A stretch of 64,000 nucleotides of DNA. It comes from Sphyrna mokarran (lineage: Eukaryota). How positions within the stretch are numbered: position 1 is the first letter of the stretch; each line of letters begins with the position of its first letter. This document shows positions 29,276 to 31,559 of the stretch, one piece after another. The notes under the pieces are model-generated. The model had not been told where the DNA came from and ran no database searches. It saw nothing but the letters and a program-made list of their open reading frames with translations. Position numbers and translations under genes: made by a program. The stretch covers positions 6,014,001 to 6,078,000 of the forward strand of contig JAGIQG010000040.1 in NCBI GenBank assembly GCA_024679065.1, read 5' to 3'.

Positions 29276-30242
29276 CCTCCGCACATGCACAGTATGCGCA
29301 CCATCTTTGACATGCGCAGTATCGAGCCGGCCTCCCACACAGCGGGTAGAACGGTTTCGCTTTTGGGGGGTGGGGGGGATTGTGGGATCTGTGGCTGCCA
29401 TTACTCATTTGGAGCATAATCTCCAAACTCCTCGACTGGGGTGGAAAGCGGGGGTGGAGGAGACAGTGACCTCACCTGACACAAAGTACATGTGGGAATA
29501 GAAGGATACAAACGGATGGTCTAGTTAGGAACACATGATCGGTTCAGGCTTGGAGGACCCAAAGGCCTGTCCATGTGCTGTATTGTTCTTTGAGTCAGTG
29601 GTTTGGATTGGGACGTCCCCTCAGCAAAACAGTTTGTTCACTTCAGGTGGAAAGATTTAGATTCCAACTTCATGGGCCTGACATAGAAAGAGGGGTGGGG
29701 AATCTGCAGTGACCTCCATCCTGACACAAAATCAGCACTGGGTCTTTGGCTTTCTGTGCAATGAATTGGGACTTAGGTGTCCATGCTGTGAGCTGGGTCA
29801 AGGGATGTCTGTGTAGCGAGTCAAACATGGGGAGGTGACCCCTGCTTTTGAGTGTGTGTGAGGGTGAATGGACCCCAATGATTGCTTATGTGTTTGTGAA
29901 ACAGAGAGTGGAATCAATATTGTGTGTGCAAGAAAGAACTAGAGCTATGGTGTGTATGTCTATGAGATAGAATGAAGAGCCTACGATTGTTTGTGTCTGG
30001 TTGACAGAGAGTGGACTCAGTACGCACGTGTGAAAAAAAGTTATGGTTTGTATATGAGACAGCAGGGGAATGTTTGTGTGTGAGAGTCAGAGAAAAGAGG
30101 CTGAGAGAGAGGGAAGTCATTTTGTCTGGATGGGCAAGTGTGAGAGATTCTGTGTATGGGTGCATATTCAACAGAGAAACCGAAACCACATAAACGTGTG
30201 AGAAGAGAAGTCCGTTGTGAGATCTGATTTTCAATTATAAGT

Positions 30243-30407
30243 CAGGGGAAAGCGCGAACGCAGTCCCCCCACTACCACAAATTCTGCAGTCGAGTATCCC
30301 ACATTTGGGGTCATCGCAGGCTTCAGCACACCCAGAGTGCAATGGGAAAGCCTCATCCTGGGAGATCAACCTGTCTGATCATTGATTCTCCCCTGCCAGG
30401 TAAGTAT
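30243..30407 (-). ncRNA. RNU1: U1 snRNA, full-length variant (gene or pseudogene), copy 1
   Basis: Minus strand reads ATACTTACCTGGCAGGGGAG...CCATTGCACTC...AATTTGTGGTAGTGGGGGGACTGCGTTCGCGCTTTCCCCTG (165 nt). The 5'-splice-site-pairing end, U1A loop, Sm site and UUCG stem-loop IV are all present. Confidence 0.93.
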
Positions 30408-31559
30408 GCTCAACTAACCTCTCATATTGTACATCACATCAAGCATTACCCCTCACAGTCAGACAAACAAAACTTTCACGCATAATATCGCCCTGTTCAA
30501 ATTTATTGTCACTGGAACAACAATAAGATCATGGTTAATCTGAAGTGGATCATATTCACTTTCCTGCTTTCTCCCCATAACCCTTGTCTATCAGAAATTT
30601 CATTATGAGATTGTGTTTTCTCTTTCGCCATGATGTTTCTTGGTTTGTGATAACCTCTTCTTCAGAAATCAGTGGTGGCAAGGTCATTGAACAAAATTCC
30701 GAAGTGGTGGGGTCGATTATTGAATGACCAGGGAATCAGAGTGTGCAGGGGAGACATGGGAATACAGATGTGACAATTCAATCAGCCAGGATCTTATCAA
30801 ATGTTGGACAGTCTCAGGGTGGCAGAGTTGCTTAGTCCTGCTCCGAATTTGTCTGTTCACATGGCTACAAGTGGACTTATTATATGAGTTGATTACAAAT
30901 CGCCTTCATACAGGCGTTAAACGGCATAAATGCCCTCATGATATTTTAATGTGTTTTTTGTCTCCTTTTCTCCCATTTCCCCGCCGGTGAAACAACCATT
31001 TCTCATCTCCTCTCTCAGCAGCTTATAACTGGCCTGTTCAGAGGCTGTATTTCATCAGTGCGTGTTCCTGCATCAGAAACAACGGATCTGCAATCAACAT
31101 GTCCCACAGAGTAATGGAGAATGGGCTGCTTGTGTTTCAGTCTGTCTCCCGGAGGATAATATTGTTTCCCCTTTTCCTTTAACTGTTCTTTTTATGACGA
31201 TCATTAACAAACCGACCCTCACAGCAGATCGCTGTCTCTCACTGGGACATTGGCTGCAGCACAGATCCAGGGGGTTTCTTTCACTGATATCCAGCTCATA
31301 CAGGACGCCCGGTCACTGAGGGCGGGGATTATAACGGCTGCCTTCACTTATGATTCTGGGATGTTTTCTCTCTTCCGCTGCAGTTGTGCAGCTCATTTTC
31401 TCAGCCTCTCCCGCTAACTGTTGGCTGACAGTTTGATCCGAGGTTAATCTGGTTTCTTCTCGGTGTGTATCTCAGCGCCTGCGAGCGCCGCTGCTTTGCA
31501 GCAACCGCAGTCCTGCTTAAAGCTCAACAGAGCGGAGCTCGCACTAACAACCCAAAGGC

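Follow-up and report, generated by a model that had tools for sequence, protein, structure and literature searches.

Two full-length U1 small nuclear RNA (snRNA) sequences, U1a and U1b, were found among the variable (V) segments of what is likely a T cell receptor (TCR) array in Sphyrna mokarran DNA. The window analysed is a whole stretch of 64,000 nucleotides (GCA_024679065.1, contig JAGIQG010000040.1, positions 6,014,001 to 6,078,000), and all positions below are counted from its first letter. The U1 identity of the two sequences, their gene-type flanks, their lack of retrocopy marks and their membership of a duplicated unit were established directly. We believe, with a little better than even confidence, that they are DNA-level copies of a U1 gene that were passively multiplied when the V array grew by segmental duplication, that have no enhancer and that are now drifting; their expression is putative.

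Two U1 copies with gene-type flanks

The whole 64-kb window, which has no N, was scanned with cmscan against 4227 Rfam families at gathering thresholds. There were two matches in total, both to U1 (RF00003) over model positions 1-166 and both on the minus strand. U1a, at 30243..30407, is a full-length coding region of 165 nt and scored 151.8 bits (E 6.6e-39). U1b, at 59605..59769, is a second full-length copy that differs from U1a at nt 60, 97 and 103 and scored 149.7 bits; the gathering score is 69.5. An earlier reading of the letters alone (the sequence-only reading) had proposed a full-length U1 in V orientation about 1.15 kb beyond the recombination signal sequence (RSS) of the segment V6, with a second copy at 59605-59769, and the run of the Rfam U1 model recovered both at these positions. 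U1a starts 1152 nt beyond the V6 RSS, on the same strand.

In the cmscan alignment, the U1 copies kept 67 of the 70 upper-case, that is highly conserved, consensus positions. The three missed positions were G34, changed to A, A35, changed to C, and a U directly before the Sm site, changed to G; nt 33, a variable position, was G. The 5' arm AUACUUACCUG, the U1A loop AUUGCAC, the Sm site AAUUUGUGG and stem-loop IV all matched the consensus, as the sequence-only reading had stated, and the arm that pairs with the 5' splice site (ACUUACCUG) was identical to the consensus in both copies. Stem I, which had been described as altered and still pairing, had 11 of 11 standard pairs in the alignment and in the fold. 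The minimum-free-energy fold of U1a reproduced stem-loops I-IV. Stem-loop II had three non-standard pairs common to U1a and U1b, and each copy had one further broken pair of its own. As for other RNA genes, the only further Rfam match up to E 1 in 27000-32500 was TCL6_1 (21 bits, E 0.32), which was taken as chance, and ARAGORN reported no tRNA gene in the window.

The flanks of both copies are those of a gene. The motif ATTGAAAATCAGA lies at 30223..30235 (minus strand), beginning 8 nt past the 3' end of U1a, and the same letters follow U1b at 59585..59597 (minus strand). It holds the core AAARNNAGA, which we take to be the 3' box consensus. This core occurs 50 times in the 128,000 strand positions of the window, and its chance of falling in a 20-nt zone on the right strand is approximately 0.008. 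The motif begins at +8, with its core at +12, which compares with an expected distance of 9-19 nt between the coding region and a 3' box (PMC3337830). Both U1a and U1b thus have the 3' box of an RNA polymerase II (Pol II) snRNA gene.

Marks of retroposition were absent in the same flanks. No A-run longer than 4 was present in the first 40 nt downstream of U1, and the two 60-nt flanks of U1a had no k-mer of at least 6 nt in common that could represent a target-site duplication (TSD); those of U1b had one 6-mer in common. Furthermore, U1a and U1b were co-linear over 1.96 kb, which includes 112 + 82 bp upstream and approximately 1 kb downstream of U1. Because the flanks are co-linear, the 3' box is present and the A-tail and TSD are absent, the U1 of the window was copied as DNA, gene and flanks together. 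The claims of a 3'-box-like sequence about 8 nt downstream, of no poly(A) tail or TSD, and of a gene copy rather than a retrocopy were therefore confirmed by the flank sequences of both copies.

Of 23 sequencing runs listed for the stretch, none is recorded as RNA of this organism, and X1, a DNA run, alone had a sizeable share (0.42). Read contigs over 29700-30900 were compared from four runs, among them X1 and X2, which comes from a related organism; depth in these contigs is not copy number. The X1 contigs fitted the U1 block closely, with 3 other letters over 30022-30228, 3 over 30199-30370 and 5 over 30376-30503. The X2 flank contigs that were listed had 24 other letters in 137 bases and 31 in 276. 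In X1, the depth was 207-2035 over the U1 body, 46-193 over the block's own flanks and 46-73 upstream. Since the depth of the U1 body was far above that of the flanks, most U1-like DNA of the X1 genome lies elsewhere, with other upstream sequence. In X1 and X2, 22 contigs each fitted the 5' part of U1 from 30357 and then continued into sequence unlike the block that they shared with one another (agreement 0.7-0.79), and 19 contigs of X2 stopped fitting exactly at U1 +1. Judged from these letters, the contig pattern over 30357-30407 looks like a U1-headed repeat family.

These contigs are what could speak for a retrocopy or a U1-derived short interspersed nuclear element (SINE) inserted by chance in a V spacer, because U1-like DNA is abundant in X1 and X2 (body depth 207-3227, against 0-193 in the block-unique flanks) and many contigs leave U1 for other sequence at the points given above. 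However, the window copies run full length to the mature 3' end and then into a 3' box, they show neither A-run nor TSD, and 112 bp upstream and approximately 1 kb downstream are co-conserved between them, so we consider such an origin scarcely credible. The U1 retropseudogene and the snRNA-derived SINE were rejected for the missing A-tail and TSD and the 3' box that is present. A mobile element carrying U1 was also rejected, since the repeat search found neither direct nor inverted terminal repeats at the limits of the block. SINEU-type SINEs and U1 retropseudogenes have U1-like sequence in common with the window copies, and such elements seem common in the X1 and X2 genomes. Unlike them, the window copies have no A-tail, TSD or added SINE body and have kept their gene flanks.

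Duplication of the U1 block with the V array

U1a lies in a block of 1.34 kb at 29260..30601 (minus strand), for which self-BLAST gave no match in the window except the block of U1b at 58620..59963 (minus strand). The left end of the second block is approximate, and its junction to V-unit DNA is at 59964. Self-comparison of the window placed the starts of the 11.56-kb V unit at 11715, 23267, 30602, 42177, 53734 and 59964, and the U1 block abuts only two of these six starts. Above the level of the V unit there is a higher-order duplicate of approximately 30 kb, in which 10784-28050 matches 41245-58545 at 98.6% and the part with U1, 29188-31146, matches 58548-60507 at 96.1%. The U1 block lies within this duplicate, which bears out the claim that U1 was co-amplified with a V cassette. 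The U1 blocks are 96.1% alike and the adjacent 17 kb 98.6% alike; other units may have acted on them by gene conversion. Since 27648-29112 is repeated at the end of the window, a third U1 is expected approximately 1.13 kb past it.

Some further features of the block edges were observed. Just before the U1 block, the higher-order copies differ by an insertion or deletion of 1.14 kb (28051-29187 against 58545/58548). An inverted repeat with 34-nt arms, 88% complementary, lies at 11419-11515, and an arm-like piece in the opposite orientation lies at 29153-29259, at the left edge of the U1 block; this piece may mark the join of block and unit. The short U1-bearing unit also holds an open reading frame of 267 aa at 25745-26548 (plus strand), which by eye looks like the C-terminal part of a reverse transcriptase of a long interspersed nuclear element and had no Pfam match at E 0.001.

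On the right side, the U1a block meets the DNA common to all V units at 30601/30602, so that 194 bp of the upstream DNA are distinct. The sequence-only reading had put this at about 200 bp, and the measurement agrees with it, with the addition that 82 of the 194 bp are a high-copy repeat. We also asked how far this junction could be an assembly artefact in a repeat-rich region. No listed X1 contig bridges 30520-30601, where a high-copy repeat breaks contigs, and X1 may be the sample behind the assembly of the window. Nevertheless, two copies that are 3.9% different over 1.96 kb have this junction in common. Because two copies that share the junction differ by 4%, it is not a one-off assembly error, and we hold an artefact to be most improbable.

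Taken together, we propose that the copies arose as follows. A small, complete-looking U1 unit, with approximately 112 bp of its own upstream DNA including a motif like the proximal sequence element (PSE), the 165-nt coding region and the 3' box, would have occupied a spacer that separates two V segments in an array of TCR alpha/delta type. The V array would then have grown by tandem segmental duplication, most likely via unequal crossing-over, and the 1.34-kb U1 block at the edge of the repeat unit would have been copied passively with the unit. With no distal enhancer, the copies would be transcribed weakly at best by Pol II and SNAPc, and the altered apex of the U1-70K loop (nt 33-35) would probably lead to poor accumulation of the RNA. 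The U1 copies would thus be passengers with no part in TCR biology, like human variant U1 genes and pseudogenes.

Upstream region, U1-70K loop and function

Directly upstream of the coding region, U1a has 112 bp of its own DNA at 30408..30519 (minus strand), of which the window holds no other copy besides the U1 blocks and whose X1 depth resembles that of the other block flanks. It is followed at 30520..30601 by an 82-bp piece of a very high-copy interspersed repeat (-113..-194), which lies directly upstream of the U1 unit and is found again at 59882-59960. The summed contig depth of this piece in two bins was approximately 230,000 and 174,000 in X1 and approximately 170,000 and 3,700 in X2, compared with 46-400 beside it. 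It also had depth in X4, and within the window it was found beside the two U1 copies only.

The motif TGACTGTGAGGGGTAATG lies at 30444..30461 (minus strand), which is -54..-37 of U1a, and U1b has a motif one base unlike it at 59806..59823 (minus strand). At position 30446, the contigs of X1 and X2 carry the letter of U1b. The motif was likened to a PSE by comparison with the PSE consensus; the match is weak, and the core is about equally good on the opposite strand. The weak PSE-like motif that the sequence-only reading had noticed is thus present, as a candidate PSE. In the human snRNA gene, the PSE lies near -50 (PMC3337830). The octamer ATGCAAAT did not occur in the whole window on either strand (shuffle mean 5.5, sd 2.2), and no octamer with at most one mismatch was present within 500 bp upstream of U1a or U1b. 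Both copies therefore have no octamer distal element, which a Pol II snRNA gene has at approximately -220, and the same reading had likewise seen no octamer distal sequence element (DSE).

The loop of stem-loop I, which binds U1-70K, is GAUCAGACAG in the window copies, compared with GAUCAaGAAG in the Rfam consensus, so the conserved U1-70K loop of the U1 family is not kept. The human motif of this loop is UGAUCACGAAGG (PMC10404622). The change in loop I is confined to nt 33-35, and G28, A29, U30, C31, A32, A36, G37 and G38 are retained. The U1 had been called a variant, and this was borne out in one sense only, namely against the Rfam consensus and the human loop motif (PMC10404622). In the structure of the human U1 snRNP, A29 and A36 close the loop, U30, C31 and A32 make the contacts to the RNA recognition motif, C33 and G34 stack on each other, and A35 to G38 stack; U1-70K holds nt 33-35 via stacking and phosphate contacts (PMC4383343). 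In human cells, the NEXT-exosome degrades U1 that fails to bind U1-70K (PMC13573567). Human variant U1s with a changed stem-loop I reached only low levels even when the RNU1 promoter drove them (PMC10870369). The loop in other sharks was sought by scanning metagenomes for stem I with the loop left free, which gave no match, and in the literature searched the altered loop motif was not in print except for one listing on an unrelated topic. The X1 contigs end at 30370 and begin again at 30376, on either side of the loop. A polymorphism of the loop was considered as the reason and dropped, because variation 30 nt off (at 30341 or 30406) can equally give such breaks.

The differences between the two copies were also compared. 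The U1 body had 3 differences in 165 positions, against 75 in 1798 elsewhere in the block, which was not significant (Fisher P 0.21, binomial P 0.084). Each of the three differences damages one copy: A60 in U1b breaks the pair 60-80, A97 in U1a breaks a pair of stem-loop III, and G103 in U1b replaces a conserved loop A. The letter of U1a at 30311 is private to it, with 27.6 of 1356.8 depth in X1 and no depth in X2 and X4. From these letters, the copies appear to have drifted since the duplication.

Several results weigh against passive copying followed by drift. The U1 RNA is nearly intact, with a perfectly paired stem I. When the gene unit from -112 to +50 was taken together, the copies differed at 7 of its 327 positions, compared with 71 of 1636 in the remainder of the block (binomial P 0.026, with segments chosen post hoc), and this lower divergence leans towards some constraint. 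In X2, the depth was 287-323 in the proximal upstream bins and 0-200 in the other flank bins, which is a thin hint that a unit of U1 plus promoter exists in extra copies. On analysis of the loop, U1-70K may still bind the window copies, weakened rather than lost, because A29, U30, C31, A32 and A36 are kept and C33/G34 are held by stacking and phosphate contacts (PMC4383343). In addition, the loop of the window could be the normal U1 sequence of the species; among the U1-body differences from the read contigs that were listed, 30311 stands alone.

We therefore weighed whether the copies might be working U1 genes, normal or expressed variants, that are driven by the PSE-like motif, processed at the 3' box and independent of the TCR locus in which they are accidentally placed. 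We regard this as a serious rival, although less probable than passive copying. The coding region would suit such a gene, with its conserved positions, four stem-loops, Sm site and 5' splice-site arm all kept as described above, and so would the well-placed 3' box, the post hoc divergence of the gene unit and the raised proximal upstream depth in X2. The PSE-like motif has its centre near -46, not far from the approximately -50 of the human snRNA gene (PMC3337830). However, octamer and DSE are missing, the match to the PSE is weak and the core about as good on the other strand, and two conserved positions of the U1-70K loop are changed. All three inter-copy differences are damaging, and the upstream depth in X1 (46-73) is no higher than that of the block flanks, while U1-like DNA reaches 207-2035. 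Passively multiplied gene copies without an enhancer remain our preferred reading.

The sequence-only reading had also suggested that U1 may be switched on as the V region opens in developing T cells, or that its Pol II/SNAPc complex may shape V accessibility. What speaks for such a coupling is geometry only, in that U1 stands in V orientation 1152 nt past the V6 RSS and approximately 757 nt past the V11 RSS, and that U1 and the V unit recur together. The U1 block is found at only two of the six V-unit starts, so most V segments do without it, and the copies show drift; no paper joining snRNA, TCR V segments and shark was found in the literature searched. We thus consider the coupling highly improbable. 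Deletional rearrangement of upstream V segments would remove the U1 copies by geometry alone, which is silent on function. A broader idea was also considered, in which sharks would have a distinct U1 lineage with a remodelled U1-70K apex (G33 A34 C35), as a working minimal gene multiplied via the TCR V array. Its dosage and chromatin would be tied to the V region and changed by V(D)J deletion, so that the U1 mix of the T lineage would differ. We believe this to be very unlikely.

Related systems and the V segments

Human variant U1 copies lie in segmental duplications of 1q21. Human variant U1 (vU1, RNVU1) genes and DNA-mediated U1 pseudogenes are full length, have gene-type flanks and arose by DNA duplication, as did the window copies; in both, protein-binding loops have an altered sequence and the promoter or 3' box elements deviate (PMC10870369, PMC13573567). 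Human vU1 genes are expressed at low or uncertain levels, and their RNA undergoes quality control (PMC10870369, PMC13573567); expression of the window copies is putative. In contrast to the human genes, the carrier of the window copies is an antigen-receptor V array of a cartilaginous fish, and only nt 33-35 of loop I are changed, the remainder being almost intact. Compared with canonical vertebrate U1 (human RNU1), the window copies likewise have all functional coding elements, with a 3' box close behind the coding region and a candidate proximal element at about -50 (PMC3337830). They differ from it in that they have no octamer distal element near -220, their upstream DNA is cut at -112 by the repeat and at -194 by V-flank DNA, and their loop I does not follow the consensus. 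Among known kinds, the human variant U1 gene or DNA-mediated U1 pseudogene is the closest. In the literature searched (titles and abstracts), no paper was found on shark U1 genes or on snRNA genes in shark antigen-receptor loci.

For annotation, this means that full-length U1 sequences in this V array should be entered as gene-type variant copies and not as retrocopies, and that they should be counted among the U1 genes of the species only with RNA evidence. The locus also illustrates that a position at the border of a growing antigen-receptor repeat can be enough for a small non-coding gene to gain copies. If the copies are expressed, a basal jawed vertebrate would offer a naturally occurring U1 whose U1-70K loop has a changed apex and whose copy number changes in rearranging lymphocytes.

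The U1 copies are surrounded by an array of V segments. There were 11 V exons on the minus strand (1863-60862), all 11 of them open, and each was followed by CACAGTG, a 23-nt spacer and ACAAAAAC[C/T]. The segment V6 lies at 31599..32053 (minus strand), with a leader exon at 32008-32053, an intron and a V exon at 31599-31907 (Pfam V-set, E 1.7e-15); its RSS at 31560..31598 (minus strand) consists of CACAGTG, a 23-nt spacer and ACAAAAACT. The V11 exon with its RSS lies at 60526..60862 (minus strand), upstream of U1b on the same strand. U1b starts approximately 757 nt beyond this RSS, and approximately 390 bp of spacer are missing there. The V exons fall into two groups that are approximately 60% alike, one with 12701, 24253, 31591, 43163, 54725 and 60557 and the other with 5531, 17651, 36538 and 48113; the exon at 1863 is of a further type.

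Among PDB entries, the full-length single-domain matches of the V segments were TCR alpha chains and V-delta-1 at 70-72 bits, and single-stretch matches to single-chain variable fragments scored 73-74 bits. Judged from the V segments alone, the array is likely of TCR alpha/delta type. The nearest proteins were unnamed Ig-like proteins of Chiloscyllium punctatum (63%) and Callorhinchus milii (52-54%), with nine matches at E <=1e-10 among 13 candidates. Relatives of the V segments in Chiloscyllium and Callorhinchus fit a cartilaginous fish.

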